From contig JBLDXI010000015.1 of the NCBI GenBank assembly GCA_047495785.1, positions 3,348,001-3,412,000 of the forward strand: a stretch of DNA of 64,000 nt. The letters are read 5' to 3'. Source of the DNA: Lepidodermella squamata. Lineage: Eukaryota > Animalia > Gastrotricha. A program made the translations under genes and the position numbers. Shown piece after piece: positions 17,082 through 56,490 of this stretch (the first letter of the stretch is position 1; every line of letters starts with the position of its first letter). The notes under the pieces are model-generated. The model was not told where the DNA came from and ran no database searches. It was given only the letters and a program-made list of their open reading frames with translations.

Positions 17082-17250
17082 GTTGGAATTATCACAATAA
17101 ATGAGCAAATATCTAAGAAAAATTACAATAATTTAAAGATTAAACAATGTTACTTCTTCAAATAAAATATCACAGTTGAGTTATGAGAAAAAGCACGAGT
17201 GTAATTGAATAGTAATCTAATAAAATTGATAATATCAAAATAATTGAAAA

Positions 17251-19158: not shown

Positions 19159-19204
19159 TAAAAATCTAGATTGAAAATTAAAGTTAGCAAAATTAGCTGA
19201 AAAA

Positions 19205-22373: not shown

Positions 22374-23396
22374 ATGCCGAACGTGCAAAATCTGTTTCAG
22401 CAATTAACTAAGGGCAGTCGCCTTGCTTTGGCAAGATCGATTACTTTAGTAGAGTCGACTGATTTCGGAAAGCGCCCAGAAATTTCTCAAATGATGAATA
22501 ATGTCTACAACTATAATCAAGAGAACGCGTCCAAGCGTAACACATTCCGCCTTGGCATTTCTGGACCCCCTGGAGCTGGGAAAAGTACTTTTATCAATGC
22601 CCTTGCTGGATTTCTGCTCAACAATGATGCTAAATTGAAAGTATCTGTGTTGACCGTGGACCCAAGCAGCCCCCAGACCGGAGGGTCTTTACTTGCCGAT
22701 ACGTTGCGAATGGAAACTCTCGGTCAGTTCGCTGATCCCGATAGAGTTTACATTCGTAGCACGCCTTCATCTGGTCATCTTGGCGGAGTTCATCGTCGCA
22801 CACCCTATGCTATTCAGTTGGCCGAAGCGGCAGGTTATGACGTGACTCTGGTAGAAACTGTTGGAACTGGTCAAAGTGAAGTTGAAGTTGCAGGCATGGT
22901 AGATTGCTTCTGCGTTTTGATTCCACCTGCAGCGGGTGATGAAATTCAAGCAATTAAGAAGGGCATTGTTGAAATGGCCGATATTGTTGTCGTAACCAAA
23001 AACGACCCTGTCTTCGCTGACGCTTGCCGTCGAACTTACCGCGATTATTTATCGGCGTTGAAATTATTTCCTCCGAAGCCGAATGGCTGGAAGCCAGTTG
23101 TTGCTCGAGTTTCCGGTAAAACCGGCGATGGCATTCCTCAAGTTTGGGACTACTTGCTTAAATATCAGACCGTGACCAAGGCAAATGGATTTTTCAATCA
23201 CAATCGGTGCACTCAGTTTGAAAAACTGTTCTTGACCGAAGTCGAAAAACAGTTATTGGAGACTGTTTATAACAATCCAAAATTCGCTAAACTCTCCGAG
23301 GAGCTTCAATATAAAGTTTCTACTGGAAAAATGTGGCCAGCATCTGCCGCGCGTTCTTTCATTGCCGAAGTTTTTGGTAAGAAAGCGGAAAGCTAA
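22374..23396 (+). CDS. MMAA: Methylmalonic aciduria type A GTPase (MMAA/MeaB)
   Basis: LARSITLVES, GISGPPGAGKST, VDPSSPQTGGSLLAD, VETVGTGQSE, GDEIQAIKKGIVEMAD. Confidence 0.92.
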   Translation: MPNVQNLFQQLTKGSRLALARSITLVESTDFGKRPEISQMMNNVYNYNQENASKRNTFRLGISGPPGAGKSTFINALAGFLLNNDAKLKVSVLTVDPSSPQTGGSLLADTLRMETLGQFADPDRVYIRSTPSSGHLGGVHRRTPYAIQLAEAAGYDVTLVETVGTGQSEVEVAGMVDCFCVLIPPAAGDEIQAIKKGIVEMADIVVVTKNDPVFADACRRTYRDYLSALKLFPPKPNGWKPVVARVSGKTGDGIPQVWDYLLKYQTVTKANGFFNHNRCTQFEKLFLTEVEKQLLETVYNNPKFAKLSEELQYKVSTGKMWPASAARSFIAEVFGKKAES

Positions 23397-23663
23397 TTGA
23401 GGAAAACTTCAAGACTATACTTGTGATAGCAAAATTAACAAATTATTAAATCGATTGACCTTCTAGTGCTTTTGAATTAGTTGTTTGAATGTTGCCTCTT
23501 CCTGATGCCGCAACAGCTAGCTCAGTATTCCATGAATCAGCTGTAATGTTTTATATTTATTCTCATCGCCGAAACCTCTACTTATAACTAGGAGTGCTAA
23601 ACTATTTTCGAGTAAATGTTGAATGTGTGATTTATTGTTTAATTTTAGGTTGTTATACCAAAA

Positions 23664-26600: not shown

Positions 26601-27308
26601 TATTTTTCCTTCGTCTCGCCGAATGCGACTGGAATGGCTGCAAGGGGCGAGAATTTGATTGAAATTTCGTTTTCTAACGATGGAGAAATGACTGACGAGG
26701 CGTACGTTATGTTGACTGTTGATGCGGCTGGTCGAGGGGGCCGCCACGAGTTGGCTATGATAGTTCATGATGCCTACTTTTCACCCGGGTGCAGTTTCCG
26801 TTTCCGACTCGAATGGCTCTTCGCCAGCGGATCTTTCCTATGTGAGCTTGTCGACTCGTGGCATCACAGGGCGAGGTCTTTCGGATCACACTTGATACCT
26901 GTACCATCAAACGCGTTTGACTTGACCGCCTCAGACCCTCTTCGTTTAATCCTAGAAATTCCGTTCAAACCAGAGGAGATAATCAAAATATTGAAGCCTG
27001 ATAACTGGGAAGAAAATCTGGAGCATAACTCCACCTTGATTTTCGAGCTGATTTTGAAGTATTTTGCTTTCATGAAAATGGTGCGTAGTGGCAGTTATTT
27101 CGTCCACACATCTGGTGTTGCGTTCATTCGCCACATACCTGGCCGTATTGAATGGGCGTGGAATTTTCAAGTTTCACGACGCTGGCAAACAGTGATGGAA
27201 AACGAAGCTGGCGATAAACTGCTGGCTAAACTTCGCCGGGTTTGTTCGAATGCGGACGACAGTCTTCTTGAGCTTGTCAAACAAAAAGGCCTTCTTGCTG
27301 ATAATTAG
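23664..27308 (+). CDS. DEPDC5: GATOR1 subunit DEPDC5/Iml1; exons 23664-24094, 24145-24733, 24786-27308
   Basis: VFRS..REMWQYD, DLYEVIVQNE, FDRTG, DLVC..QPFHPVPLF, WINVSFY, GVDWKSL..PA.LP, RL..GFQ, LEW..ASG, FVHTSG, WAWN. Two ~50-nt introns keep the frame. Confidence 0.87.
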
Positions 27309-27386
27309 AAAATGATATTTTAAGGCGGAATTTACTATTTTGATTAAATTATATTTTTTTATAACTTTTTGCATAGAGGTTTAAAA

Positions 27387-29443
27387 ATGTTTCATTTATC
27401 GAAAAATGAGTTCGAGCAGTTTCAGCCTTACGCAGAAAAAGCGCTGGTATCAGCTGGAGCTGGTTCAGACTCGCGGCTTCTGCCTATGTTACTCGCGTGT
27501 CTCGAGCGGGGCGAGTCGAGGTCGAAGTTGGTTGAAAGGCTCAAAACTAAAATGGACTCGATGAAAGCGGAAAAAGTTGCCGATAACATCTCAGATGCGC
27601 TAGAGACGTTTCGGTCTTCTTCAAAGAAGCGGAAAGACGACTCAGCGCCGACGAATGGCGACTCAAAACAGCCTCGACTGTCCTCTGACACTGGCAGTGT
27701 GATGAATGAGGAGATGATTCAAAGAATGCTGGATGCTGCGAAGCGGGAGTTGAGAGCAAAAGCGGCTGGAATCGTACCCGCGGCAACCCCGGCTCCCGAC
27801 CCGGCTGTTGCCGCGTTGGATAACGAGGCTGCTGAAAAGGCGCGTCGAGCAGCTGAAATTCAAGCTCGTATTGCAGAGCGATTTTCAGCCAACCCAGCGA
27901 TAGCAGCTGCCCTGCAAAAACTACAAGTCCCTGGTGCGGTCGCAGCAGTGCCCGAAAAACCGTCGGGTCGAATTATTCTCGACGCCCAGGGTAGGGCTAT
28001 CAACGCTTCAACAGGTGAAATTATCGATCTGCCCCATCACGCGCCCACCTTAAAGGCGAATATTCGAGCTCAAAAGCGGCAACATCTTCAATCTGTCATT
28101 CAAGAAACTCAGCAACAGGTGAAGCATCAGGCGTCGGAGGAAGCTTCGACGTCCACGTTTTACGACTCCAGAGTTGCGGTGCAAAAACACGTGAGGCGGG
28201 GTAAACAGCTGAAATTTCACGAGCAGGGGAAATTTGTGAGAATGGCCCAGACTATCAGGTTAAAACGGCAGTTGGAGCGATTGCAGACTGAAATTGCGCA
28301 ATCAGCGCGGAAAACTGGTATAACCTCGGTTGCGAAGTTGGCCATCGCCCAGCCGCGTATTGATGCTACGACGGCTGCGACCCCCTCAAACGTGCCTGCC
28401 CTTGAATGGTGGGATGCGATAATTTTGCGGACAGATACGTACGACGCGTTGCCGGAAGAAATTTTGCCCGAGTCGTTTGAGGGTATAACAAATTTAGTCG
28501 AGCATCCTATCCAGGCGCAGGCGCCTGATATCAAGCCGGGTGCGGTTACGAAAATTCCGTTGTATCTCACGAAGACTGAGCGGAAAAAAGTTCGCCGGCA
28601 GAACAGGCGAGCTCTGCAGCAAGAAGAGCAGGAAAAAGTTCGACTCGGCTTACTACCAGCGCCGGAGCCAAAGGTGAAAATTTCGAATCTGATGCGAGTT
28701 CTCGGGACGGATGCTGTTGCTGATCCGACCAAAATCGAGCAAAGGGTTCGCCAGCAGATGGCAAAACGGCAAAAGTGAGATTTTTGAAATTTTAAGGAGG
28801 AATTTTCAAAATTTTGAATTTTAGGGAGCACGAAGCTGCAAATAAAGCGCGAATGTTAACTTCTGATCAGAAGAGAGAAAAACGGCAGAAAAAGCTGCAG
28901 GATGAATCAGCTGTTGATGTGAATGTCTCAGTCTACCGTGTCCGCGATTTGTCGAACCCGTCGAAAAAATTCAAAGTCGAAACAAATGCGAAACAACTGC
29001 TGATGACGGGATTTGTTTGTTTGTCAAAGGAATGTAACGTCGTGGTGGTCGAGGGCAATATGAAACAGCAGAAAAAATTCAAGCAATTGATGTTAAATCG
29101 CATTAAATGGAGTGAAGACCCGGTGCGAGAATGGTCGGCTGGTATCGGTAAAAATGCGAAACTTGTCGTTACTGAAACAGCTGATGGAGGTAATTAATTT
29201 CCTCGAAGAAAGCATTCTTTTAATCAAATAATTTATTTAGATAAACCCGCCGGTTCTTCGGAAATGAATTCCTGCGAGTTGGTTTGGGAGGGCACGGCTA
29301 AGAAGCGAGCGTTTGGCGACGTGATGTTCAAAATTTGCCAAACCGAAACTGCGGCTCGTGACCAATTTCGTCGCCATAATGTTGAGCAGTACTGGGATCT
29401 AGCGTATAGTACTTCAGTTCTTTCAGAAGCGTTTACCAAGTGA
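27387..29443 (+). CDS. PRPF3: U4/U6 snRNP protein Prp3; exons 27387-28774, 28825-29189, 29241-29443
   Basis: [75 protein letters not shown]. Confidence 0.95.
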
Positions 29444-29600
29444 ACATTATATAAGCGGTTTTTTTCTCTGGGATTTTGAAAAAATAATCATCACCTCACC
29501 CGTGAAAAGAAACCATTTCTGTTTAGTCCACATAATACGCTGTTACAATAAAATAATTTCTTTTGCTATAAATTTTATTTTAGGAATTTATAACATTGAG

Positions 29601-30694
29601 ATGGGGAGATTGGCTTTGAGTTTATGGCTAGCTGTAATCATTCCCTACGCCGTATTGGCTGCGTCTGGTGGAAATTCCCGATGTAAATGCGCTTGTTCTT
29701 TCAAATCGAACACCACCTCTCAGCGAGTTTGGGTGAATACCGAAATTCAGCCCGACGATTGCCGGTGCAGCATTGTTGTGACGAATGCGCCTTCCGACTG
29801 CGAATACGCCTGCGAATGCGCCTATGAAAACAGAAATACAACGATTGTTCAGGTAAAGTATTAAAATTTAGGTCTAAATAGCATAGCGATTCCAGCATTT
29901 TTTATTTCCTTGATCGCCAATGATACCCCCGTGACTCTGTGACTCCTTTATTTCAGTCATTAAAATTGCAATTTTCAAAATGGTTGATATCGGAAAAATC
30001 GCTGATTTGAAAAATCGATGTTTGGAATCGATATCGGCTCTACGGTCTTAATTATAACTCGAAAACGTGACTGCTCATATAATTTAGTGATAAAAAGAAA
30101 AATTGAGAAAATCTGGTGCTGGAACCCCAAATTTATGGTATTGGTTTGGCACAACATTTAAACATTTATTCAAAAATTTAAAATTTCATTTTGAAACGAT
30201 TTTTTCAGGTTGTTGTGATCGGGATGATCACCCTTATATCAGGTCTCTTCATCTACATGCTTTTCCTACTCTGCCTCGACCCGCTCATCAACCGACGCGT
30301 TAGGAGCGGGCGAAACCGGCTTGTTGAGCAAGATGAGGTGAACATGGACCATTTCACGGGTACAGTTACCTCAATAGCCACCACCCCACCGGCTAGTTTA
30401 AGCGCCGTAACTACAGGGCCTCGTTTCAACGGCGATTTGAACGACGATGAAAACGAGGTGCTGAGCGATTCCGAGCGGCCGCGACTGGACTCGAACGAGA
30501 TACGAGTGCCGCAGGGTGGAAACCGCCTGCCGGCTGGTTCTATGACCAGTTCTATGGCGAGCGACGGCCCGGAAGACGGCCGAGTTCGGTCTTCATCGGT
30601 TCTGAGCCGAATTCGACAGCCGCATGAACGGTGGCAGGGTCAGCTGCAGAACCAGCGCCACAACGTCTATTCCAACCGCAGTATTCTAAATTAA
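29601..30694 (+). CDS. TMEM9: TMEM9/TMEM9B family membrane protein; exons 29601-29852, 30209-30694
   Basis: Signal peptide, RCKCAC, CECAYENRNTT, TM segment YMLFLLCLDPL, C-terminal WQGQLQNQRHNVY. Confidence 0.88.
29975..30135. repeat. Dispersed intronic repeat (MITE-like); related copies at about 37160-37260 (reverse) and 42465-42595
   Basis: Shared core gatatcggaaaaatc(g/a)ct...aatcgat..ttggaatcgatatcg and tggaaccc. Each copy lies in an enlarged intron. Confidence 0.6.
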
Positions 30695-31139
30695 ACGCAG
30701 TGATTTTTTATAATTTTTCTTCGTAAAAAATTGTTTCAATCTAGTAGAAACTTGGTGAATGCGCGTTATAACTCTCACTTCGAAGCTAATAATGAAGATG
30801 ACCGATATTTATTGTACACCAACTATGTATGACCCTGTCATCGCAATTTTTCTATATATAATTATATATGAGACCAGTTGAATACGACTTTCATTTGGAT
30901 GAATGGTGTTGAAAAAATGAGAATAAAAGATTGATTTTATTATAAAACAAGATGTTTTACGATGCGTATCATTGATTTTGTGCCAGGAGTACGTTCTACG
31001 ATATTCATCGGAGGCTGATTGTTCAATCAGCAATATTACGAGAGAACAAGTTGAAATATCGACATTTTACACGGGCATTCTTGTTCTCATAGTTCAAGCA
31101 CAAAGCCCAATGCTTTGAAAATCAGCCACATTTCATATA

Positions 31140-31573
31140 CCGTAGTTACCGAAATACTAACCCGGGCTTATACAAAAATGACACCTCGAAAAATAGGGAA
31201 AAGTAGGCTTCTATTCAAGACTAGGCTTCTATTTGAGATAGGCTTATGCAACCAAGACCGGACTTGGTTTTCCGTCTTTCAATCTCAAAACTCATCTAAT
31301 TTTTGAATATCAGCTATTAGCTAGGTCGTCTAATACCCGAAAATTAAGAATCGTTAGGAAAGCTAGAACGAAAGGCATCGTAAATCGCAGATTATTGAAA
31401 ATCCTGGGGCATTTTCAGCTTTTAAATACAGGTCAGCTCTTGTTTCGCACGTGCCGTAGTAGCCTAGGCTACTATTCGAGATAGGACTATGCATCGACGA
31501 ATTTCAATTTAACTAGGCTTCTAAACGAGACAGGCTTCTAAACGAGGGTGGGCTTATATTTCGGTAACTACGG
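31140..31573. mobile_element. Tc2/pogo-like MITE, 434 bp
   Basis: Perfect 17-bp TIR CCGTAGTTACCGAAATA / TATTTCGGTAACTACGG, TA on both sides, internal ~17-bp aggcttctattcgaga-like repeats. Confidence 0.88.
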
Positions 31574-33675
31574 TAAGCTATTTGACCCGATTTTTGACAA
31601 AATTCGGTGATATCTAGAACGAGACTAAACGCCGTATTTGAGGAATTTTAGTGCTGGCGCCCGATATACGAGGTAACGAGTAACCAATTTCTAGATCAGC
31701 CATCGTGTGCAGCCCATTTACGTCAATATAAATTGAATTAAATATTTGACTATTCAGAGCAGCTCTCGACTAATGATAGCCTAGGATGCGTTCCCAGAGG
31801 ATCCTGAGGAGTCAGTCTTCACGCGTGTTTCTTTCACGTTCGATTAAAATTTACACGTTCTTTTATATAATGGTAAAATCAATTACGCATGTAATTCATG
31901 ATCGCCGATATTCAGCTCGTCATATGTAGGTGTGGTTACATGCGAAAATTCTCAGAGGAGTCCCACAGATCGATAATCACTTCAGACAAAATTACAGCGG
32001 ATCTTCTTACTCGTGGCAACATTTTCGGTGTCATTTTTCCTACCATAGGTATCATATTTTATACCATCAGAACTGCGGGTTTTTTATTGTGTAAAAACTC
32101 ATCATTTTTAATGCAAAATAAGAACGGACCCAATGATGGATTAGCTTTGGCCTAACTTACTCTGGACGATTGCAAACTACAAATTTCCATCAAAGCTTTT
32201 AAGCTACGCTCAAAAAATATCGCTTTTTCATGCATCGATCACTGGCCGTCAAAGTTCGTTTTTTATTGCTGCTCTTAGCCACGCATCAAGTATCTCTCTC
32301 GCTCTCTCCATATATCGAGGGTGCCCTATATATTGGCTGATGGCGGCGCGGTCATGAAAAAACAATCATGGGTTGTATTTCGGTTGCGTTTTTTCGCGTA
32401 ATAACATTCCAAGCAATAAAAGCTGCATTTCCGGGTCGGTCTTTTCACGCTTTATTTGGCAATAAATTCGGGGTTTCCGAGTATGCATGACAAAAATATT
32501 AGAACTACTCAACGGTGTCGAATGTCTGTTCGAGAAATCTGAAACGGAAGGGTATTTTGAGGACATTTGAGGCTCTCACAATTCTCATATTTTAGCAAAG
32601 ATAAAAACACTTCCTCTGCTTTTGGCAAATGTGCGACTCAACTTTCTGCTCGAACATAGGATTTTAATCAGTCATTTGTATAATCGAATGGTCGGCAATC
32701 TAGTAATGTATCTTACTCTAGCTGTAGATCGATGTACGTGTTTTCTCCCCCCGGGCTTACTGCTCGCTGAACATTTAATCTTTGCCTGCTCAGCACGTAG
32801 AAATTGCGCCAAAAACTCCCTTTCATCGATTATTCCTATTGATGAAATTTACTCCATTCTTTTTTAGATCTGAAAGATGGCTGTTAATCTTATACCTTGT
32901 AAGAAATATGACTATTTTTATTTCATATTTGTCCGTTACTGTCGCAAGAATGACCCAGTTATCGACCATATCAGTTCTCATGATTTTTTCACCTAATAGT
33001 GAACCATTTTAAGCACCTTTTTATCAGGCTGAATCCAGAAATAGAATGTGGCTTATCCTGCAAAAATGACTAATCGCCCCAACCTTTTGCACTCGAAGAC
33101 GAGTAGCCACATCGATTTACAATTTTCGCCCTATTTGCTCCCTTGCGATAACAAGAATGTCCTGAAATCAAGCGCTCTTCATTTTCGCGTGACTGATTAT
33201 AGGGTTGGCGCAATGACCCGCTTGTATTATCTGAGGGTGTCGAACAATTTTGAGCGGTCAGCTATATGAATGACGCATGATGACAATGCGCACGTAAAAT
33301 GCAAAACGCCTCCGTATAACTGGAAAATTTAGGGCGGCATATTAGAAAACTTCAGTTAAGCTAATCAAAAATAAACTATTATTATCCATTTCTAGTTTTG
33401 CTCTGAAAAACACAGATACGCAAGTTGACAACTTGAATATTTTGCTTTGCCTTTGACTTTATTGCATGTTTATTGGTTCCTATCTCCAAATAAATCGTCT
33501 ATTTTAAGGTAGCTTTTAGAGTCATCACTGACGACATTCGAACTGTTAACTGTAGATTACGAAGTAATAACTATAGGCAACATCGATTTTATGCGTAAAA
33601 GGTATCTCTGATGAGAACACATCAGACATCAGTTCAGCATTTCTACTCCGTAGAATTTCGCAGTTTAGGGCGATG

Positions 33676-33700
33676 GGATATGGATATGGATATGGATATG
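33676..33700 (+). repeat. (GGATAT)4 microsatellite
   Basis: ggatatggatatggatatggatat. Confidence 0.8.
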
Positions 33701-34835
33701 GGATTTGGAGTAAATTTGGAAACTCTCTACTGATTTAGCAAGTGAAACGCGTTGACTCATCTTTTATGTACACTTTATCATATCTTTTGGGACTATGACG
33801 AATTCATACCTAATATGCAGTCTAGGCCTTATATATGGGATTTCCCGGGATCAAAACGTCACATTGCAAATTCGATTTTTTACAAATGTCCTGTTTACCT
33901 GCTCAGCTAAGCCTCTAGACACAGAGGAGCTGTAAACTGGTCTCAATAGATTAGTCATTTTTGAGAATTGAGAATAAGGATTTGAACTTCTGGAACCTTT
34001 CGTACGGACTTTCCGGTTTAGCTGATTCATTTATGAGAAGATCGCGAATGCTAACCATCAACAGTTAGTCAATAATATTTTCACGCTCAATCAAATAACC
34101 TTCCACCTCAGGTAATCGGTGGCAAACATTTGTAAGTAGTTTCATTCAAAAAATATGAAGATTTTGGTGGCGACTCCACCCCCTCCACCTCGTCTTTCAC
34201 ACTTCGCTGCTCTGCCGTGAAAAAATGATGCGCAGTTATGCAATTGACCAAAATGCCGTGTTTATCATCGCCTAATTTATTGGCTGTACTTTTACTAAGC
34301 TCGGGAAACGTTATCGTAGTTACTCCTCATCGCTACTGATCATAAAAAAACGGTAATAATGAGTCTCGCTAGCCGTAGTATCAGTGCGCGCGTGAAGACT
34401 CCTCCGAAACTATTTATCATACGCCCGCATCTGTTTTTTCGCTATGCCGCGTTTACCATACGTATAGTTTACGACAAAAAACAGCTGCAGTTCTGCGCTC
34501 CGCTCTAAAAATAATCGGTCCGTTGTATAGAGGTACCTTCAATTGTTGTTATTGTTGAATGCTAAAGCATATTAGCCACTTTTCCGCTTCCTATTTTTTT
34601 CTTATTTTTCAAGACATGACATGTATAAGTGGTTATTTATTACCGCAGCGATTTATTATAATATGCAAAATTTTCTGCTGCGGTGTTGTAAATTAATTGC
34701 GCCGGCGTGGACAATTTCCGCACTCAGTGTCCGAAAACGTGAACAATATCCTTTGTCCTATCCTCGTAATAGAAACTCACTTCTTATATTATAGAAACAA
34801 AACCTCAGAAAAAGGGGATTATTTTAGATTTTTAT

Positions 34836-36432
34836 ATGACAACCTACGACGAAAGCAGGTCGCTAGCTCTCGGGCGTGTCATGCTCGACGAGCTGGCGTC
34901 GAAAGGCTTCGACCTACGCGACGTGCCTTCCACCCTCGCCTTCATCACAGCTGAGCTGGGCCGGCCGGTGAACTACAGCGAATTCTACCTGCCGAAATGC
35001 AACCCGTCGCCTATCAGCGATTGCATAGACGGGCAACGGGTGCCAGAACTGTTCGGCGACGTCATGGGTCGGTACATGCGAAATCGGCTCGTTCTCATCC
35101 TCCCAGTCCTATACATCTTCACGGCAATATCTATCGTATCAAACGCGCTCGGAATTCGGGCTGTCGTCGGAATTCGATCGAAATTGCCTAGGCACTGGGT
35201 TTTGATGAACCTCTCGCTTTCAGATTGCCTTCTAGCTCCGTTAAACGCCATTAAAGTGAGCCAAAAATTGAAAAAAATCCGCCTTAACATTTCTTTTTTT
35301 CCTAGGTGACTTCAGAAGTTTTCGCCTATTCCGAATTTGACGAATTTTTTCGAAGTTATTTCAATTCGGTGTGGCAAGCATTTTTCCTCCTGTGCCCGCT
35401 GTCGTTGCTTTTCCTCGCGCTTGACAATGTGATCGCCGTGCTGTCGCCTTTCTTCTACGAACGCCGATCAGGATCAGGCGCGCGCGCTCTTATGCTGAGC
35501 GTCGGCGCCGCCGCGTGGTTCTGCATCATTCTGCTCGTCGTTTTGCTTAACGTGTTTCAAGTTCAATATTCATCAACCGTACAGCTCATCGTGGCAATTG
35601 TTCTGCTCATGATTATTGCAGTCACAGTCACGCTCTACCTAGCTCTGGCTCTGAAGGCCGAAAGTTACAGGCGAAAGCTGATGGTTATGGCTCTCCCATC
35701 CTCGGGTAAGCTTCGGGATTTTTTCGAAATTTCTACAATTTAAATTAAATTATAATGATTTATTTCAGCTGATCTTTTAGCATCACGTATGCCTCCTTAA
35801 TAAAATCTGATTTTCGATATTTTATTTTAAAATTTACACCGATTAATTTAATTAATTTATTAAATTTATTAAATTATAAATTTGTGTTTTTGATTTTTTT
35901 AGTGATGTCCAATGAGAAGCAGCAGCGTGAATTGTTAAGGAGTCGCATGAAAACGACCGCTACAACGCTGTCAATTGTGTTAACTCTGGCCGGCTTCTGG
36001 TCGCCTTTCATCACCTACCTTCTAATACCCGATTCGGCTAAATTTAGTCACGTACCTTTCTACATCAACTTCCTATGCGCCGCGCTGTGCCTTTTCCAGT
36101 TCGGAACCGCTGTCGATCCTATTGTTTACTGCTGTAGAATGGTTGAGGTTCGCCGGTCGTTGATTGCCACGGTAGTGCCCTCGTCATGTCGCGATCGCTT
36201 CACGAAAAATGGCGATCAGTACAATGATACAAAACGCCGTTCGACCATCGGCTCCAGCGTGCCACCACGGCGCTCGGAAATGTCCGATTTAACCCAACCC
36301 GAGCATTCGACTTCGTCGAAATGCGGCAATAATTCACCGGTTAAAAACGGTAAACAAACATTACCTAGCAGCAGGGATAAGGTCGACGAAACAGCTCAAA
36401 GCCTAATTCTGTCAAGTGATAATGCGCCGTAA
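34836..36432 (+). CDS. Orphan class A (rhodopsin-like) GPCR; exons 34836-35255, 35306-35705, (35769-35786), 35903-36432
   Basis: Seven hydrophobic segments; TM1 SN, TM2 NLSLSD, TM3 LALDNVIAV..PFFY, TM6 FWSPF, TM7 DPIVY; introns keep the frame. Confidence 0.85.
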
Positions 36433-36686: not shown

Positions 36687-39600
36687 CTAAATTTCACGGC
36701 TACTTCTTCCGGATTGCCCATCTTTACTGCCCGAGAAGATTGCCGGTGTTTTCAGAGGTGATATTGCCGTTCTCGACCTTGCCGCTATTCCCATGGCGTC
36801 AAGGTGGCTCAGCTCTTGAACAACAGCAGAGTGTCCAGATGCAACCGCATGCATCAGTGCCGTCCTGCCGTCTTTATCTTTCAGTTTCGAAAGACGCGGT
36901 TCTTTTTCGAATAGGTACACGGCAACGTCAAGGTGGCCATACCGGGCAGCGCACATAAGAACGTTGACACCGTTAATGTCGGATATTTTAAGCGCGTCGC
37001 TGTAGGCGTGGTACAGAAATTCGATAGCGTCGATGTGTCCGCCGGAAACTGCGTACATAAGCGCGGTCCAACCGTTTCTATCCTTTAGTGTGACACTGCA
37101 AAAAATAGAAAATGAAAATAAAATCATCTCCGAAATATTAGGATTAGAAATGGTACTGCATTATCAAAAATTCAGTGATTTTTCCGATATCAACGATTTA
37201 TAGGAGGCCAGCATTGAGAATTATGATGCACAACTGACGCCACTAGTAGCTGAAATAACAAATCGTAGGACCATAGGAGACATCGATATCGATCAAGAAA
37301 GGCTAATCCCGAAATCGCAACATTTCGTGAAGCTAAAATTGAGTAATGGAACCTTTTTGGACCTTTTTAAGAACTAAAAAAGTTGTTCCCCGAAATTGAA
37401 AATTGTCCGTGAGAATATCATGGCCTTTGAATATTGAATTTTCGAAGCATTTTAAGCTTGAGTAATTCTCCTTAATTTTATTTCTTATGTTTAAAACAGA
37501 GGAGCTATCACTGAGGGTTCAATTGATAAAAGTACATTCTTACCTGACAGGGTTGACCAGGTGGAGAAACTCAACAATCGCGAAATGTCCCGATTTAGCA
37601 GCGTACATGAGCAGTGTCAAACCGGTGTATTTATCTTGAAATCCAGCCAAATCCGTTCGCTTGTCGACGTAGTACTCAACCAGGTCAAGAAACCCGTTAC
37701 CCGCCGCCATCATCGCGGGCTTTTCCAAGTTCTCCTCACCCTGTGTCCGATTGAGCAAAAAATCAACAACTTCCAGGTTGCCGCTGAATGACGCATGGGT
37801 CATCGCATTCCAGCCGTTGTTATCCTGTATCGGCAGAATATCGACGTATCGATCGCATAGAAATTGCACGATTTTCTGGTGGTTGTTAGCCGCGGCAAAC
37901 ATCAGAGCCGTGCAACCAGTTCGATTCTTGTGCTTCACAGCGCTTGGGAATAGCTCCGTGATTTTGATTAAAACATCAACAGCGCCTTTTCTAGCGGCAC
38001 ATAACAGCAGCTCGCCCTGATCGTTTTTGTTCAACGCCTTGCCGTCGTAGGAATTGACGAAATTTTCAAAGGCTGCCACGCTGTCTTTATCATGTAGGCA
38101 GTCGAAAAACTTGCGGTAAGACTCATTCAGGCAAAAATCATCCTCCCATTTTCGTTCCTCATGCAATTTTTGCGTCGGTTGTCCTAACATTTCGATCAGG
38201 CTAACTCGATCCGGAGTGTATCGCCACGTGTCTTTATCGCCGAATAAATGCTGTAGTAAACTTTTCGGCTTCCCGTTATTTTTCGTGGGATTAATCGAGA
38301 GACTCAAATCTCGATCCTCGTTAACCAGTGAAACGATATCGATTCGAAATTCGCGAAGCTTGAAAATGATTTCACGAATCAATCGATACGAAATACTAGC
38401 GCCGAAGAATGAATTCGGATTTATCGCCCAGTTGATAGTGTAGAGATAGTGCAGGAACGTCATGCCGTTAGTTTCAGGCGACTTTTGACGGCAAAGTTCG
38501 GCCAGATCAGCCGCCTCAAGCTTCTCAATCGCCTTTGACAGCAATAGAAGCCGCCGCTGTTTCACAGCTTCGTACAACTTTTTCGTTGAATATGGATGGA
38601 TAGATTCAGCTTTTTTAGTGTTCAGCCGGCCTGTTATAATTCGAAGCCGAATTTTGCTTAGCGATTGATCTGGCAGTTTGTAGACACCCGCCGCATGATT
38701 CGCAGCAGCTTCGTGCAGCATTTGATGAATAAACCAACATTCTTCACCTTAAAAACGGAAATTAAAATGTCTTAAAATTCAGTTTCAATTAAAGAAACCT
38801 GGGTTATTCGCGACTGTTTTCCGGACGAGGGACTTGTCTGCTAGAAGTTGGCACATTCGCTCTGTAGCCGAACGATTTTGAGGGTCATGATCCCACAAAA
38901 TAGCCAAATCTTGAATGCTAACAGGCTCGCCGGGGTCAAACATCAGAAACACATAGTACGCCTTTCTAAGCTTGTCTGCCAGCATTTTTAGGCTGAACTC
39001 GAAAAGCTGGACAACACTTCCGTACTGATTTCCAACATTTAACGTGCTAACATTTGAAGCCATGAAGGTTTGAAACTGCTCTTGCTGGACGTTTTTGAGA
39101 TTAGCCGCGACTAAACTAGCCATTAAAGGTAGCCCGTAACAACGCTGGGCTACAGCTTGAATTTGTTTAGTCGTCAAAGTTTCATTCAGAGAGTAAGTTA
39201 TCTCCAACATTTCCGTAATGTTTTCATCGGTCAATTCAGTGACGCGTAAAACTTGCCCGATCAAAGGAACTTTTTGGTACAACGGCGTAGTTAAAACGAC
39301 AGGATCTCTTGAAATCACGATACACGGAACGCCCGGGTGGACTTGGCGGAAAAATTGCAGTAGATCCTCGTTGAAAACATCGTCCAGTATGAAAATTGCC
39401 TGCTCGGAAAATTGCCTGAAAAAATCGACGAATTGCGCCAGGCGGGTGAATTTTGTGATTTTGCCGAAGCGGGCGTTAACTTTAGCCAAGAGAGCTTTTA
39501 GGAAGGTTCGTTGCTGCTTCACGCCGAATTCTTTCGGCTTCTGCCACTCGAAGCAGTTCAACCAAACTGCAGCTCTTACACTGCACGTGTTGAGGAAAAA

Positions 39601-40391
39601 TTCACGATTCGATTTCTCGGTGAAGACTCGCTCGATTAATGTGGTTTTTCCAACCCCACCATCACCCGCGATTAGTAAAGAGCCTTGTCTAGGGTTCGCA
39701 CAAACTGATTGAATCCCCCTCAGAATTTCCATCTCATAATTTGATCTTTCATAGTATTGAGCCGGTTTTTGAATATTTATCGCTCGAAATCTGAAAATAT
39801 TTCAGTGATTTTATTTTAAAATAATTTTTTAAGCTGGCTTACTTTCTAACTTCCAGGCCCGAAGGAGCTCGAATTACGTTCATGTTGAGCATTTCGAACA
39901 AATGAACTCGAAGAACTTCGTTCGGATCTTCCTCTTTCAAATAGTCAACCTCTACTTTGCCGCCTTTCAATGCGTAGAACCAGTCGTCGAATTTGAATGG
40001 AATCGCCTTAGCTCGAACGAAAACCATCTTTTTATTCTGATCAGCTGCTAGCATAGCCTCGCGTTGGCAGTCGAAATTTGTCTGATACCGCTCGCTGTAG
40101 ACAATTATCACCAAATCAGCTAATTTTATCGCCTGTAACAATTCAAAATCTGGAAGGCTGAATCTAATGAAGAAAAGGGCTTACCTTTGCTATTTTGTCG
40201 TACTTTTCTTCATCGAATTTGCTAATAGGAACATTGATGTAAGGAACAAATCGTCCAGATTGCAGCAGATAGTCAGCCACTTTATGAGCGATTTCAGTCG
40301 TGCTAGCTGTATCGATTCGGTCATAGCTGATATAGATTGTTGGCCTGAAACTTATCGCCGATGTCTGTCTGCTGTCAGCATCGTCTTCCAT
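36687..40391 (-). CDS. TIR-NB-ARC(STAND)-ankyrin repeat protein (NLR-like), about 1033 aa; exons 40391-40185, 40132-39843, 39790-38799, 38747-37544, 37095-36687
   Basis: TIR: IYISY, AIKLADLVIIVYSERY..CQREA. NB-ARC: GDGGVGKTT, FILDDV, IVISRD, CYGLPL, LADKSLV, IHQ. Repeated GxTALMxA ankyrins. All four GT-AG introns (52, 52, 51, 448 nt) are phase-compatible. Confidence 0.85.
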
Positions 40392-41568: not shown

Positions 41569-44280
41569 ATGTCCTCATACCTGCCACTAGAAGATTGCTT
41601 CGTTTTCAAAAGTAATATCCGTAATTTTCATTAGCTTAAATTCTATTTTGTTCTCCATCAGTCGTGTTGGTCGGCGATTCTGGAGTAGGAAAGAGCAATG
41701 TCTTATCTAGGGAACGCAATCGAGGCAGCTCGTTAAGTGGAAAGGAATTGAATTCGCCTGGGGTTGAATTCGTCACCCGAACATGCCAGATCGAGAAAAA
41801 ATTAGTGAAAGCTCAGGTAATTTATAATATAAATTTTATTTTATTTTAATATTGAAGCGTTTCTCATTACAGATCTGGGATACATCGGGGAAAGAAAGCT
41901 TCCGTCAAATAACCAATGCGTAATTTTTTTGCTTTTTTCGATTGAAGCTACCTTATATTTTATGTTATACCTTAATTTTATGATTAATTTATAATTTAAT
42001 ATATTAATATAGGTATATAATTTAATAATATATAATATAATTTATACGAAATTTTTTTCAATTTTTAACAGAATTTACCGTGGAGCTTATGGAGCGATGC
42101 TTGTCTACGACATCTCACAAGCCACCTCTTTTGAGCACTGTTCTAATTGGCTGCGAGAACTCCGCGAACATTCCGATAACGAGCTGGTCGTCATGCTTGT
42201 TGGCAACAAATGCGACTTGGAGCACAAGCGCGCGGTTTCCACGGAAAAAGGCCGCTGGTTTGCCGAGCGCAACGGACTCATGTTTATGGAAACGTCCACC
42301 TTCGACGCAAACACCGTCGATACAGCCTTCAGCTGCTTGTTGACAGGTAAATACATATAATTTATGACGGCTTAATAGAAAACTATGAATCCTATCACCT
42401 CAAAATTTTTTATTTCCACAACCTTGTAGTTATGTTGAAAAGCTTTCAATTTTTGCTTCCGGGAATGCTGATATTATCGGAAAAATCACTTATTTTTTTA
42501 ATCGATACTTGGAATCGATATCGACCCTTATTTTTCGTAAAATTCTAGGGATGACTCATTTTTGGGAAATTTAATGTTGGAACCCTATAATTGGTACTTA
42601 TTTCCTATTTTCTAGAAATAATGCGTCGCCGGAATTCCAGTCAGCCGCCAAGCCGTGACAACTCGATGGCTTTCATGCACACAGCCGAAACGTTGGCAGT
42701 TCGAACGGCACAACTTCAAAGCTCGATATCGCGCTTAGAGAAGGTCCGTAGTCAATCAGACGCCGGTCTACAGAGGATGATGCCCTTATCTGAAATCGTA
42801 ACCTCCCTTTCTCAGGAATTGCGTGAAGCCAGGCGTCAAGAAGCTATCAATCGAACAAGACTCGAGGAGGAGATCAACAAACGGCAACACCTGGAACATG
42901 CCGAACTGCTGAATGGCTCTATTTCGCCGATTAAGGAGGTGGTTTTATTCTGAAATTACTTCAGCATTGTTTCATTATTTTTTGAAATTAGAAGTTTAGT
43001 TTGCTATCTCTTGGTAAGGAGATAGCTTCTAGGTCCGACTACACCGTCTTGAAACATCTCGGCGGAGGTCAGTTTGACAGGGTTTGCTTGGCTGTTCGCA
43101 AGTCGGACCATGCCAAGTTCGCCATCAAGGAGGTGAATTGGACTGGCATATCCGAGGCCGGCAATTGTAAATACTCGTCGAAAGAACTGATTGCCATGGC
43201 GACGGAAGAAGCCGAGCAAATGGTCATATTGCAACACCCTAATATTTTACGGGTTTTCGGATTTTTTGAAGGTTTGAATTAAATTAATAACAAATTTAAC
43301 AAACGACTAATGCTACTTCAAATCGGCTGTCTATTAAGATGATATGGGTATTTTTGATAAACGCAAGTCATAGAAATTAACAGAAATTAGCTTTTAGCTA
43401 ATACAAATAATTTAATCAGGCTAGAAAAATCTATCAATTATTTACTACGAATTAACCTAGTTAGCTTAGCCTTCGCTATAGCTATTCTAGGATAGCGGTT
43501 TTGTGACTTTTGTCCTATTTTAGAATGTGTCGGCGGTCATCTTTGTCATCATTTGATCATGGAACACTTTGAATCGGGAGAGCTGTACGATCTGCTACAA
43601 CGGCGCGAAGGAAATCTATTTACCCCAGCTCAGATAATTCCTTGGATCGAGCAACTGTGTTCGGCTGTAAAATATCTTCACGACAGAGAAATACTTCATC
43701 GAGATATCAAAACTTCGGTAAACGAAAAATCATCGAAATCTCTCGAATTTTTTACGGAATTTTTTATCTAGAATATTTTCTGCCTGGACGGGAATCGCAT
43801 CTTGAAACTTGGCGACTTTGGTCTGTCAAAAGATGTCAAGCAAGCAACAAAACGTACCACGATTCCTGAACGGTATATTGCGCCCGAAATGCTTGGGACG
43901 GACGAACCTCCTTACACCGACAAATGCGATGTCTGGAGCCTCGGCGTTGCTATCTACGAAATCGCCTGCCTTCAACTACCCGTAAATTGATAGGAAATTG
44001 TAGTCATTTTTCACATGTCTGTTTTTAGTTTGACAGCCACGAAGGGAATCGTGAAGCAATCAAAGAAAAAGTTCTTGAGTGAGTTTCATAGACTGATTCG
44101 TTTGAAATATAATCTCGCTGAATTCGTAGGGAAACGCCTAAGCCGATTCCAAGCATTTACGGGTCGAATTTGCAGCAGCTTATCGATAATATGCTTCAAA
44201 AAGATCCGGTCCGACGTGTTGCCATGCCTCGAGCTCTACGGCTCGCTATTCTACTTTCAGAAATGGACACAACCGAATGA
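41569..44280 (+). CDS. Rab11-like GTPase - coiled coil - NEK-like Ser/Thr kinase fusion, about 575 aa; exons 41569-41611, 41662-41816, 41873-41919, 42072-42346, 42616-42938, 42992-43271, 43524-43717, 43772-43981, 44029-44078, 44130-44280
   Basis: Rab part: GDSGVGKSN, GVEF, IWDTSGKE, NKCD, METS. Kinase part: LGGGQF, FAIKE, HPNI, HRDIKTSNIF, LGDFG, YIAPE, DVWSLG, MLQKDPVRR. All junctions are phase-consistent with no internal stop. Confidence 0.75.
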
Positions 44281-45509: not shown

Positions 45510-46440
45510 ATGGAAGTTGATGACCAGAACTTGCAAATGAAAAGTTAGCATTTTTAGCGACTCGCTGCTTTTTCATTTCTTTTGTCTTACCCATAGTTGT
45601 GATCGTTGGCGATACTGGGACTGGGAAGACATCGCTGTCAACTCGTTTCTGCCATAAACAATTTCATGGCAAGACAGAGCCGACTATCGGCATCGAATTT
45701 ACAACGTACAAAACTAAATTCGATAAGAAATCAATCACTATTCAGGTAATCATCGATTCCTTAAAAACCATTTTTTTTAATTTATGATTTTTTCCCCAGT
45801 TATGGGACACTGCTGGCCTTGAGCGATACCGAGCAATAACTAGCGCTTATTACAAAAGGTGCGATGGTCTGTTACTGGTGTACGACTGCACTAAGCGGGA
45901 AACTTTCGAAAGGTTACCGAAATTGCTGAGTGAAACTAGAGTCCACGGCCCCGCCGATTTGGTCATCCTGCTCGTCGGCAATAAATCAGACCTCTGTTCG
46001 GCAACTATGGACGATGAGGATGATATCGATGATCGACGAGCAGTTACGATCGATGAAGCAATGGACTTTGCAGGTGAGAGTATTTTCAATTAAATTTTCA
46101 ATAATATCAGCGTCAAATTTTAATAGAGAGCGAAGGAATATCGGGTTTTATCGAAACTTCAGCGGCCGAATCTACGAATGTGGAGCAAGCCTTTAATAAA
46201 GTTATCTCAGGTATGAAATAACCCGAAATTAAAGTTATTTCCAACTCAAAGTCATGAAAAATTTCAGAAATTATGCATCAGCGTCAGCGGCCTAAGGCAG
46301 TACAGCTCACCTGTTTGAATCACAGCTATGAAGACGACGAATACCCAACACCTGATGTCGAACAAGCCGATGAGATGCCGGTGGTTATTGATGACATTGG
46401 AAATATCGATTCCCCTTCGGCTGTCTCGGAAATAGTTTAA
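45510..46440 (+). CDS. Divergent Rab11-family-like GTPase; exons 45510-45543, 45597-45745, 45799-46073, 46127-46210, 46268-46440
   Basis: [51 protein letters not shown]. Confidence 0.85.
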
Positions 46441-47713: not shown

Positions 47714-49833
47714 TCACAGCAGGCCGTACTGCGTGAGATGGATGCGCTGAATCATGTCTCGACAGTCATTAAATACTCGCCTGACGTTTTCCGTATCAAC
47801 GGCACATGTAAAATGAGGATAGCATTTGTGCGATGCACCAGGCGTTTGATCACTCGTCGAAATGCGCTGTATTGAAATAAATTTTCAATTAAAAAAAATT
47901 ACCGAAAAAATCCAAAAAATTACCAAGAATAGGTCACGAATGAAATACTTTGCCCTTGCAACTTCAGGAGTATCATTTGGTCCCATTTTAGCTACAAAAA
48001 ATTTGAATTAAATTAAATTATCGTGGCTAGAAGTTTTTTCTATACCATCAACTGGCAGTTTATAGGAAGCATATTCGGGGAAGAACTCGTCAATTTTGGA
48101 CCGGCCAGCTTTGACCTTTTCTTCAAGTAGATCCATTTTGTTGAGGAAGAGGATGATTGAAATTTGCCTGAGCCATCGGTTATTCCAGAGACTTTCGAAA
48201 AGCTCTATCGATTCGGTGAGCCGATTTTGAGTTGGATCTTCGCGAAGAACCATGTTGTAACTCGAGCATGACGTTATGTACATGATAGCCGTTACATCGT
48301 TGAAGCATTGAATCCACTTGCGCCGCTCCTCGCGCTGCCCACCAACATCAAACATACTATAAAAAATTGAATAATCAATTATTAGGGCATCTTTCAACAG
48401 TCGCAGCTAACTGGAAGTGAACTTTGTTGACGGTGAATTTTGTTTCGAAAATGCCTGAAGTTAGCACTCGGCATCGTAGGATGTCTTGGTCGTCGGGCAG
48501 GTAGTCAGGTTTCCGAACAGTTTCGACTTTATCGAGGAAGCTGTTGAAGGAAAAAGAATTTTTTTTTATTTTCGCACCTGAAAATTCTTTGGGTCAATCA
48601 ACTTTTCATCTTTTGCACTGCCGGTAGAAAAAATGTTGCCTCAATTTTTTGCGCCGCGCGCTATTTATATCGATGATGTTGCCAAAAATAGCGCACGCCT
48701 TTCATTATTAACGAGTTGAATACCAGGCGGAGAGTTTATTATAAGCGAATGAGAAAAATCACAAACGTCGCGCCGCTCGATGAGCATCATACGGTATAGT
48801 ATCAGTAAGCTCAGGTGATGCATCAATTCATCCTTATAATAATAAAATAATGTAGCAATATATCGCTATAGCTGAAGAAGAAGAAAAACAGAGCGGCGCT
48901 ATCTACAAGACGCTGCCTGCATACAGAAAAAAAACGCCGAGTGATTGCTATGCGCAGCGTAATATATTAACCCTTTTTATTCGAGGGTAATAAAATATCT
49001 AAAAATACGGGACGTGATGAAGCAGGAAAAATGGTTTACAGATGCCTCGATATAACTTACTATTTCGCGCAATCGATTATTTGATACTCGTTAGCACGGT
49101 CGAAGCAAGCTTTGATGCCTTTATCATTCCATAACGCCCACACATGATCGAAAAATTCCTTTGAAAAAAATCGAGAGAAAAATTGAAAAAAGCTGAAAGA
49201 TGAATGCTGAAATTACCTGTGAGTAATCGAAGGAGTTTTTCGCACCCAATTCGAGAATGAAATCAGCGCTCGGTTTCTTAGCTGGGTCTTCAAGCGCGAC
49301 CGGGGGCGTTATTTGCTCCATTGCACCAACGATTGCCTATTTCAATTTAATTTAAAAAAGAAATAAAAATTTGACCCTACTAGGTTACCAAAATGGCATC
49401 CCGAATGTTGCGTCTGATATCTTGAACTTTTTCCAGCCGCTCTCTGTAAAAGAAAAATTAGGAAAAATCCTAAAAATCCTATGAGAATTATACTCTTTCG
49501 TGAAGCCGTTAATGTGGAGGATACGCATCTGTTTCACAATAGTCGATTTTCCTGACTCACCGGCGCCTATTAGCACAATATAAGGCTGCATTTCGACTGA
49601 AATCGATCAATGAATCACAAACCTAATAGGAGTAACCGATAAGTTGATTTGTACTTTTCCTTGTCCTCTTTGAGCTGCTTTTCGATGCTCTTATCGACAC
49701 CGCCCTTCTCCTTCTCCTTCTTCGGCTTGGGTTCCTTTGGCGCCTTGGCTGGCTTGGCTACATCGCCGTTTTCGCTGGCACCGGGCGCTTCCTCGCCGCC
49801 GCCCTTGCCAACACAACCGAACAGCTTCTTCAT
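47714..49833 (-). CDS. GNAS: Heterotrimeric G protein alpha-s subunit, about 9 exons
   Basis: [107 protein letters not shown]. Confidence 0.93.
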
Positions 49834-54586: not shown

Positions 54587-56490
54587 ATGTCACTAAACGT
54601 GTTAACGCCTCTAAAAGAAAATTGGGGCTGTTCTATTCCAATCAGCCCGGTGCTCCAGGTCTCTGGCGGAGATCATGGTCTTCTCAAAGTTCCCGGCAGC
54701 CCTTACCCAAAGATGTCATCCTGTTACCGGCCAACTTCTTCAATGGCAAATCCTCGCCCCACAAACATCCACAATAGCAGTGTCCACCGCGAACACAATC
54801 TAAGTGAGGCTGATGAGCATGACGGTGATTCTGGAATCATCACCTTCTCATCGGTGGAGACTTCGTCGTTCGACGCTCACATGGATACTAGCGGTGGCCG
54901 CCTTTCGACTTCCCCGACTGGTTCTCCAATTTGCCCTCCAACGAAAAAGTTCTGCCGGCTGAACTTGACCGGCACATCTTCGCCAACCTTCTCCCACTTC
55001 GACTGCGGCAATGCAGGCGCGTTCTCCTCGCCCACAGTCAACCTCGACCAGCCGAGTTATCGCCATCGGCGGTCGTCGATCAGACGCTCTTCCGGTACAA
55101 CGAGTCAAGCTAGTCATCACCTTCCTTTCAACTCCAGCACTTTCGGCTCAGGTGCTCAAATCTCAAACTGTGCCTCGACGCCCTCGCCTCTTGCCCAGAA
55201 GCGGTTGCCAAACTACCGCAACCCGTACCTGAAACCAGTCGTGACCTACGAAGGCCCAATCGCCGATCCTAGCCCTCCGATCAACCCGGGCGATCACTTC
55301 CTGTTCTCCATGGACGAAAGCCGACCGGCGCGGCTCAACGAGCTGAATCAACGTCGGTACGATGACGAATTCGTGGAGTTGCAAGATTTGAACGGAGGTC
55401 GGTTCGGCATGACCTATCTAGCTCGGCATCGGTTGGACGGTCGGACGTACTGCATCAAGAAACTGCCAGTCCCCTTCGCGTGCGGATCAGGCCTTCAGCA
55501 AAGGCTTCTGAAAGAAGCATTCGCCCTGGCTGCGGTCGATCACCCGAATCTCGTTCGCTACTTCTCAGCATGGGTTGAATCGGGCAGTTTTTTCATGCAG
55601 CTCGAATTTTGTACCGGAGGCTCGTTGCAGCAAGCAATCGATGCTGGTCGGCTGTTGACCAGCGAGGGCGAACTCATTCGCCTGTTGCTCCACACGTGCC
55701 GCGGTCTACGCCACCTGCACCACTCGGCTCGTTTGGCGCATCTCGACATCAAACCAGCCAACGTTTTAGTTCATCTGTCAATCGATGGCAATGTTGTGTA
55801 TAAACTCGGTGATTTCGGCCACGTGACTAGCATCGACAACGAAGACGCCGAGTGGGACGAGGGCGATTCGCGTTTCATGGCTCGCGAAATTCTAGAGCGG
55901 CCGTTTGGTACGACAGGCGATTCGCCGGTTAAGGTGGACCTTTGCCGCGCAGATATTTTCTCACTCGGCCTCACAGTTCTAGCCGTAGCCACCGGCCTCG
56001 AGTTGCCGAACAACGGCCCGGATTGGCTTGCTCTTCGCACCGTTGGCCTTCCTCCTCTCACCATCAGCAGCATGAGGCTCTACAATCTTCTACGTGGCAT
56101 GACTGATCCAGTGCCGCGGAACAGACCGAACGCGATTGCTTTATGCTCATCGTAAGTTAATTACACAAATTTGAGGATGCTTTTCTAATTATTCGTTATA
56201 GGCTGAATGAAATGTCAGATCGCTGCACGTTGAGGCAGGCTATCGTAGGTGGTGCGATTGCGTCGCGGTCCGCGCCGGCTGGTTTCCAGGAAGACTCTGA
56301 CGATGAGGAGAACAACTACGACTGCGGCCGGCGTCGCAAAACTCGAATTCTACTGCCAGCAGACTCGAAAAACTCGGACGAGATAAGCTCTAGACAATTT
56401 TCGAAAGCCGCTCGGCGGGCCGTTCCGTCAGCCCCATCGTCGTCGGCCGGGGCGACGCGATTCCGCCGAACTGCGAGTTGGTTAGCGTAG
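54587..56490 (+). CDS. WEE1: Wee1-family kinase; exons 54587-56151, 56202-56490
   Basis: RYDDEF, HPNLVRYFSAW, HLDIKPANV, YKLGDFGHVT, EGDSRFMAREIL, ADIFSLGLT, LPNNGPDW; SP/TP-rich N-terminus. Confidence 0.88.

Follow-up and report, generated by a model that had tools for sequence, protein, structure and literature searches.

Can a Rab-type GTPase be tied to a protein kinase in a single polypeptide by a short linker, and does an animal make such a protein? The question is raised by a gene of the gastrotrich Lepidodermella squamata located in a 64,000-nucleotide stretch of contig JBLDXI010000015.1 (assembly GCA_047495785.1, positions 3,348,001 to 3,412,000 of the forward strand), which we call the window. 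All positions given below are window coordinates and refer to the plus strand unless stated otherwise. The gene spans 41569-44280 and its predicted product comprises an N-terminal Rab11-like domain, a candidate helical linker and a C-terminal NEK-like kinase. An initial annotation, made from the letters alone, had proposed that these parts form one lineage-specific chimeric gene. We show that the gene is expressed as one spliced RNA whose three parts evolve under constraint, and we weigh what the encoded protein may do.

The GTPase, linker and kinase exons are spliced into one RNA

Two public runs cover the locus. One of them, X2, is genomic and covers the introns; the other, X1, leaves the long introns uncovered, with contigs that pass over every intron exactly at its GT..AG boundaries, and we therefore take X1 to be RNA. 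X1 contigs are de Bruijn assemblies and not single molecules. The most informative one is 1,050 nt long and matches the window with zero mismatches in four aligned blocks (42072-42344, 42614-42741, 42814-42936 and 42990-43269); further joints connect it to exons 3, 2 and 1 on one side and to exon 7 on the other. Counted out, 20 nt of exon 1, the whole of exons 2-6 and 22-24 nt of exon 7 account for its length. One assembled transcript therefore spans GTPase, linker and kinase sequence. The exon 2/3 joint is unlisted because of a repeat filter, but the contig-length arithmetic fits and implies it. The two junctions at which the proposed fusion hinges (42346/42616 and 42938/42992) are thus both present in one spliced contig, without mismatches. 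Other spliced X1 contigs connect exons 7-8 and exons 8-9-10, the latter reaching the 3' untranslated region. The fusion gene is expressed as one spliced RNA.

The start ATG, the stop and the introns 42347-42615 and 42939-42991 of the initial annotation are in the sequence as described, with canonical ends and the reading frame kept. The interval 42616-42938, which had been read as one heptad-like exon, is spliced in frame to both sides, but it turned out to be two exons (5a and 5b) split by an in-frame intron of 72 nt (42744-42815). The X1 depth profile agrees with the removal of this intron, and no contig retaining it is found among those listed. Dropping it takes out 24 residues, including a proline and a glycine, and the protein is consequently 551 residues long instead of 575. 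In the corrected model, 11 exons run from the ATG at 41569 to the TGA at 44278-44280 (Table 1). The joined coding exons (1,656 nt) are open throughout with one terminal stop, and a TAA lies in frame four codons 5' of the ATG. The joined coding sequence was used for the frame, codon and heptad checks and for pairwise alignment, whereas database searches were made exon by exon. The G+C content of the region is about 41%, and the introns are short and of the GT..AG type.

The reading frame itself speaks for a single gene. The Rab part contains neither a stop nor a prenylation cysteine in its own frame, as initially noted, and no in-frame ATG precedes the beta3 lysine of the kinase, which therefore cannot be made alone as a working enzyme. 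Read-through of two neighbouring genes was rejected on these grounds, i.e. the spliced contig, the frame and the start codon.

Table 1. Exons and selected introns of the fusion gene, and the neighbouring Rab11-like gene (window coordinates)
Feature	Position	Strand	Content and evidence
Exon 1	41569..41611	+	ATG and 14 N-terminal residues; phase-1 end before the P-loop strand; joint 41611>41662 (GT..AG) in X1 contig
Exon 2	41662..41816	+	P-loop GDSGVGKS 41673-41696; switch I NSPGVEF 41751-41771
Exon 3	41873..41919	+	Switch II DTSGKE 41879-41896; Lys for catalytic Gln 41891-41893; joint 41919>42072 in X1 contig
Exon 4	42072..42346	+	Remainder of the Rab11-like domain: NKCD 42205-42216, ETSTF 42289-42303
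Intron 4	42347..42615	+	269 nt; joint 42346/42616 in X1 contig, shorter flank 128 nt
Exon 5a	42616..42743	+	Rab11 helix continued (EIM...), Ser/Pro-rich stretch, start of helical linker
Intron between 5a and 5b	42744..42815	+	72 nt, in frame, GT..AG; joint in the same X1 contig, shorter flank 123 nt
Exon 5b	42816..42938	+	Second half of the Pro-free helical segment of ~55 residues (candidate coiled coil)
Linker-kinase intron	42939..42991	+	53 nt, GT..AG; joint 42938/42992 in the same X1 contig, shorter flank 123 nt
Exon 6	42992..43271	+	Kinase N-lobe: LGGGQFDRV 43058-43084, FAIKE (beta3 Lys) 43118-43132, beta3-alphaC insertion, alphaC Glu 43202-43219
Exon 7	43524..43717	+	alphaD-alphaE; start of catalytic loop HRDIKTSN (43697-43774, extending into exon 8); joint in X1
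Exon 8	43772..43981	+	DFG 43814-43822, activation segment, APE 43880-43888, DVWSLG
Exon 9 (count of the initial annotation)	44029..44078	+	Kinase C-lobe; joints 43981>44029 and 44078>44130 in X1 contig
Last exon (10 in the initial count, 11th in the corrected model)	44130..44280	+	Subdomain XI DPVRR, stop; protein end ...SEMDTTE
Neighbouring Rab11-like gene	45510..46440	+	5 exons, 237 residues; model by sequence; found by paralogue scan of the window

Intron 4 contains a high-copy repeat of about 49 nt (42475-42523), which is marked by a depth spike of about 25-fold in X2 and by loose ends in both X1 and X2; a second copy, 84% identical, lies at 29988-30036. Rfam and tRNA scans of the window were empty.

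Differences between two copies point to constraint on all three parts

X2 holds two forms of the locus, one identical to the window and one diverged, and both forms of exon 7 are expressed in X1. Against the diverged copy, 14 differences are listed in exons, and every one of them is synonymous (five in the GTPase, four in the linker and five in the kinase part). Random placement of the same substitution types in this coding sequence would give such an outcome with a probability of about 3e-8. In the two diverged contigs for which a full listing is available, exons show 7 differences over about 720 nt, and introns 20 substitutions plus indels over about 450 nt. Among the differences listed, these data demonstrate purifying selection on the GTPase, linker and kinase parts alike. 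Together, the spliced contig, the absence of an in-frame ATG ahead of the beta3 lysine and the synonymous differences across the three modules bear out the proposal of a single chimeric gene.

Intron 1 (41612-41661) stands apart in this comparison: 13 of its 50 positions are changed in the diverged copy, compared with 2 of 198 positions in the exons on either side and about 3% of the 252-nt intron. It is either an unusually diverged short intron or the site of a local gene-conversion boundary.

The N-terminal module derives from Rab11

Pfam recognizes exon 4 as Ras (E 1.5e-27), while exon 2, a short piece, gives Ras/Roc matches below the cut-off. The best solved relative of exon 4 is Rab11A (E 2.5e-30, about 59% identity), followed by Ypt31/32, Rab2, Rab25 and Rab8, with scores of 107 bits for Rab11A, 98 for Ypt31, 91 for Rab2A and 76 for Rab8. 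Exon 2 gives the same ranking, with RABA1a and Rab11A as best solved relatives (E 3e-8). Moreover, the Rab sequence crosses intron 4 without a stop and continues into the C-terminal helix of Rab11 (...LLT/EIM...). As judged from these matches, the GTPase domain (about residues 1-175) is a Rab11-type derivative.

The motifs quoted in the initial annotation (DTSGKE, NSPGVEF and GGGQFD, as well as the kinase Lys, alphaC Glu, HRD, DFG and APE) were all found in the sequence. Within the GTPase module, G1 (GDSGVGKS), G3 (DTSG, i.e. DxxG) and G4 (NKCD) are intact. The catalytic glutamine is absent, with a lysine in its place (DTSGKE versus DTAGQE); the switch I threonine aligns with a serine preceded by a two-residue insertion; the G5 motif is altered to ETST, and switch II has diverged. 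In the light of established knowledge of Ras-superfamily motifs, the module probably binds guanine nucleotide and probably hydrolyses GTP poorly, which agrees with the hydrolysis-impaired GTPase initially proposed. It also lacks a lipid anchor: the protein ends in ...SEMDTTE with no CC, CXC or CAAX motif, and its last cysteine is residue 481, within the kinase. In the absence of a C-terminal cysteine, geranylgeranylation is impossible.

A candidate coiled coil leads into the kinase

The linker covers residues ~174-272 (its length is also given as about 85 residues) and consists of a Ser/Pro-rich stretch and then a predicted helix, about 55 residues long and devoid of proline, in which E, K, R, Q and L abound. 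Pfam found no significant family in it and no COR domain, the best E value (0.024) being at chance level. The heptad a/d register is kept across the 5a/5b junction, with about four clean heptads followed by a looser register, and the linker helix is plausibly a coiled coil.

The C-terminal module is a NEK-like kinase with a divergent N-lobe

The kinase spans residues ~273-545 of 551. The Pfam Pkinase model matches exon 6 with an E value of 3.7e-7 (30.2 bits, just below the 31.7-bit cut-off), and exons 7 and 8 with E values of 5e-12 and 3.8e-15, both of which pass. The catalytic set is present, as recognized by the lysine of FAIKE, the alphaC glutamate (TEEAEQ), HRDIKTSN, DFG, APE, DVWSLG and the subdomain XI arginine. 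Two elements are atypical, namely the Gly loop, which reads GGGQFD and has an aspartate at the third glycine, and the activation segment (TTIPERYIAPE).

Placement of the kinase in a family rests on exon-by-exon matches to solved relatives. The best solved relative of exon 7 is NEK1, with an E value of 6.9e-13 (51.5 bits) versus 1.5e-8 (37.8 bits) for the next one. For exon 8, MAPKAPK2/3 and NEK2/7 are among the best solved relatives, with nearly equal scores, and exon 6, which encodes a very divergent N-lobe, gives weak matches to CDPK and Aurora only. Used as a query against 1.84 billion cluster representatives, exon 6 returned only five proteins at E <= 1e-3, with identities of at most 42%. 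Two of them, P0002 and P0004, are true members of the family: they have the beta3-alphaC insertion and several motifs in common with the fusion kinase, and their open reading frame (ORF) ends just after HRDIK, like exon 7. P0002, the closest member of the family, again has NEK1 as its best solved relative, which supports a NEK-like origin for the whole family. The initial classification as NEK-like is thus upheld at the family level, by exon 7 and P0002, although the N-lobe alone is not diagnostic.

P0002 and P0004 come from animal-type contigs in ENA metagenome assemblies. They were ruled out as orthologues of the fusion since their genes start at the kinase domain, with no Rab exon upstream in their contigs. 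P0004 has HQN for HRD and is therefore probably a pseudokinase. Another exon 6 match, P0005, was set aside as an Aurora-type kinase.

At the P0004 locus (L003:6001-8479; also L004-L006), an ORF of 583-631 residues follows on the same strand; its similarity to kinases is faint, and none is on record in L004. P0004 and this ORF may form one kinase-first gene with a long tail of no recognized family. The window itself holds another kinase, a single-exon ORF of 522 residues in a G+C-rich patch (54587-56155, +; Pfam Pkinase E 1.3e-31), which looks Wee1-like by eye and is no relative of the fusion kinase (35% identical over one exon).

The fusion appears confined to this lineage

With exon 4 as a query, 26 Rab loci were found in the JGI metagenomes, none of them with a linker or kinase exon; a scan of JGI metagenomes with exon 6 found nothing. 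When proteins of 50-159 residues were searched by words with exon 4, identities did not exceed 62%, and the matches inspected were ordinary Rab11/RABA proteins or fragments. The best exon 4 match, P0006, was rejected because it belongs to two ordinary Rab11 genes in tandem, with no kinase beside them. A literature search for Rab-kinase or Rab-NEK fusions found none. Note that, searching being exon-wise, distant fusions of the same architecture with little sequence similarity would escape. Within this scope, the combination of a Rab11-type GTPase with a NEK-like kinase appears in no paper, protein library or related genome searched, GTPase-kinase fusions as a kind being already known.

The samples that contain P0002 and P0004 also hold contigs syntenic with the window (L007-L012). 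The MeaB gene is 68% identical to that of this related metagenomic animal, compared with 48% to molluscs and 41% to Adineta. Gene order is common with contig L011 over about 23.7-35.7 kb of the window (genes called there), and the Pfam names of the genes on L007 (F-box/LRR, RRM protein, MeaB) suggest that synteny starts near 17 kb. The shared genes (window ~17000-36400) encode F-box/LRR, RRM, MeaB, IML1/DEPDC5, PRP3 and TMEM9 proteins and a G-protein-coupled receptor (GPCR), with protein identities of 50-72%. Synteny stops past the GPCR gene. On the contig of the relative, a sulfate transporter and other genes follow, with no Rab or kinase exon in the 10 kb beyond that point; the window instead has a TIR-NB-ARC-ankyrin gene (long minus-strand ORFs, 37540-39732), the fusion gene and a second Rab11-like gene. 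The negative searches and the absence of the gene from the syntenic site agree with the lineage-specificity initially proposed and confine the fusion to this lineage on current evidence.

The second Rab11-like gene, which lies 1.2 kb downstream of the fusion gene, is predicted to encode a stand-alone protein 38% identical to the Rab domain of the fusion. It has a natural Gln-to-Leu replacement (DTAGLE), the switch II sequence of Rab11 and an acidic tail without cysteine. A leucine in place of the catalytic glutamine is the classic GTP-locking change. Three intron positions are common to the two genes (behind the K that precedes the P-loop strand, ahead of (I/L)WDT and ahead of EIM), and exon 5a and the last exon of the neighbouring gene begin with the same EIM. 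Given the common introns, the loss of the glutamine and the missing anchor, the two genes look like a local set of soluble, Gln-less Rab11 derivatives. Most likely, the fusion would have arisen in this lineage when a genomic copy of a non-prenylated Rab11-like paralogue was spliced onto a formerly stand-alone kinase. Exon 5a would then be the last exon of such a Rab11-like gene, extended into new sequence and joined to a kinase that stands alone in the relative.

Further downstream, an ORF on the minus strand (48008-48397) has DVGGQR and NKMD motifs and by eye looks like a heterotrimeric G-alpha exon.

A model for the fusion protein and its alternatives

We consider it likely that the locus is one functional gene encoding a soluble signalling protein of 551 residues, in which a Rab11-derived GTPase module targets or regulates, through a helical linker, a NEK-derived, lineage-specific Ser/Thr kinase. 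The Rab-like module would bind GTP and hydrolyse it slowly, and would therefore be mostly in the "on" state. Being unable to insert into membranes, it would act as a built-in protein-binding or regulatory module, either docking the kinase on partners that recognize an active Rab11-like surface or gating the kinase intramolecularly. The helical linker could dimerize the protein and thereby promote trans-autophosphorylation, as in NEK2.

Several observations weigh against this model. The heptads of the linker are not significant in a simple shuffle test (462/2000), which does not separate them from composition, so that the coiled coil is a prediction. The aspartate of the Gly loop could weaken ATP binding. 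The fusion differs from Rab11 at residues that we take to be its effector contacts, namely the switch I isoleucine, several positions in switch II and the third member of the aromatic triad, which makes binding to classical Rab11 effectors doubtful; the partners may be different ones. Apart from the 14 differences listed, the two copies differ at 37 further positions, about nine of them in each of exons 7 and 8, where non-synonymous changes are thus possible. Finally, a further, shorter isoform may be made via an internal start in exon 5a.

Each of the two modules could have lost its original activity. If the GTPase did not cycle, or did not bind nucleotide at all, it would be a structural or dimerizing N-terminus of a constitutively regulated kinase, in keeping with the lost glutamine, the serine and the two-residue insertion in switch I, the ETST version of G5 and the diverged switch II. 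We regard this as rather unlikely because GxxxxGKS, DxxG and NKxD are not only intact but under purifying selection, which would be unexpected if nucleotide binding were dispensable. Nor is it probable that the kinase is the inactive partner, the protein working as a Rab-like adaptor or scaffold and not as an enzyme. The aspartate at the third glycine, the TTIPERYIAPE activation segment and the HQN found for HRD in P0004 of the relative would fit such a role, but the beta3 lysine, the alphaC glutamate, HRDxxxxN, DFG, APE and the subdomain XI arginine are all in place.

A different function is conceivable in view of the genomic setting, as the gene lies in a non-syntenic block together with a TIR-NB-ARC-ankyrin gene and a second Gln-less Rab11-like gene. 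The protein could be an integrated-decoy immune sensor, in which a soluble, permanently GTP-like Rab11 mimic baits pathogen effectors that hijack or modify Rabs, and the attached kinase is turned on as an immune signal once the bait is bound or modified. It would then be an animal counterpart of the integrated-decoy and tandem-kinase resistance proteins of plants. This seems to us quite improbable: there is no sign of diversifying selection, 14 of the 14 listed differences being synonymous, no link to infection is known, and one NLR-like neighbour may be there by chance. As to the existence of the fusion protein itself, the RNA label of X1 is inferred and de Bruijn contigs cannot prove single molecules, so that one may think of two genes with occasional read-through splicing, or of a contig made chimeric during RNA assembly. 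This would, however, leave the Rab part without a stop or prenylation motif and the kinase without an in-frame ATG before its beta3 lysine. In addition, the joints are exact, of the GT..AG type and in frame, with flanks of 123-128 nt and no mismatches, no alternative contig is found among those listed, and the linker is under purifying selection too; we give this explanation almost no credence.

Relation to known GTPases and kinases

The Rab part has the P-loop, NKxD and the Rab motifs IWDT.G.E, YRGA and LVYDI in common with Rab11, RABA and Ypt31-32, together with the Rab11 C-terminal helix (TEI...). It differs from them by the lysine that replaces the glutamine, the serine that replaces the switch I threonine and the missing prenylation cysteines, and by the linker and kinase found where they have a hypervariable tail. 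Lacking both the catalytic glutamine and a prenylation motif, the fusion falls outside the canonical Rabs. RABL2, IFT27/RABL4 and IFT22/RABL5 resemble it in being soluble, Rab-like G domains that lack a lipid anchor and act as protein-bound modules, but they are small, ancient, stand-alone proteins that are not derived from Rab11 and are not known to be fused to an enzyme. The large Rabs (Rab44, Rab45/RASEF and Rab46/CRACR2A), whose Rab domain is prenylated, resemble the fusion by their multidomain build and by the association of a Rab domain with a coiled coil (a candidate one in the fusion). The account of their architecture in PMC8303950 gives EF-hands, a coiled coil and a C-terminal Rab domain, and describes no kinase in that context. 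Domain order is thus reversed, and the kinase is found only in the fusion.

What is understood of GTPase-kinase fusions comes almost entirely from ROCO proteins such as LRRK2, whose kinase, of the TKL/RIPK type, phosphorylates free Rabs and in which coupling between G domain and kinase is considered to require the COR domain. The idea for ROCO proteins is that a built-in G domain controls a kinase (PMC6320773 and PMC6337361). The protein described here likewise has a Ras/Rab-like GTPase N-terminal to a kinase in one polypeptide, as in LRRK1/2, DAPK1 and the Dictyostelium Roco kinases. By contrast with these, no COR domain follows its GTPase, about 85 residues of linker being found instead; Pfam detects no LRR, ankyrin or WD40 repeats in the exons scanned; its G domain derives from Rab11, and its kinase is NEK-like (best matches NEK1, MAPKAPK, CDPK and Aurora). 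By these differences, the fusion is not a ROCO protein.

Among NEKs, the core of the fusion kinase is nearest to NEK1 (HRDIK..NIF, alphaE region), and its candidate coiled coil adjoins the kinase as it does in NEK2, where the coiled coil drives dimerization and trans-autophosphorylation (PMC12564199). That source, a recent review, enumerates the accessory domains of the family (coiled coil, PEST, DEAD-box-like, RCC1-like and armadillo) and names no GTPase domain among them. Unlike in NEKs, where the kinase is normally N-terminal, it is C-terminal here, and its N-lobe is very divergent; given the C-terminal position of the kinase, the fusion is not a typical NEK.

The fusion is thus a natural, expressed and constrained derivative of Rab11 that is tied to a kinase by a short, predicted helical linker alone. 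With its 551 residues, the protein would offer a small and tractable system in which a Rab-type switch may control or target a kinase without a COR domain. Together with the neighbouring Gln-to-Leu gene, it indicates that several soluble derivatives of Rab11, probably locked in the GTP state, are maintained in this animal.

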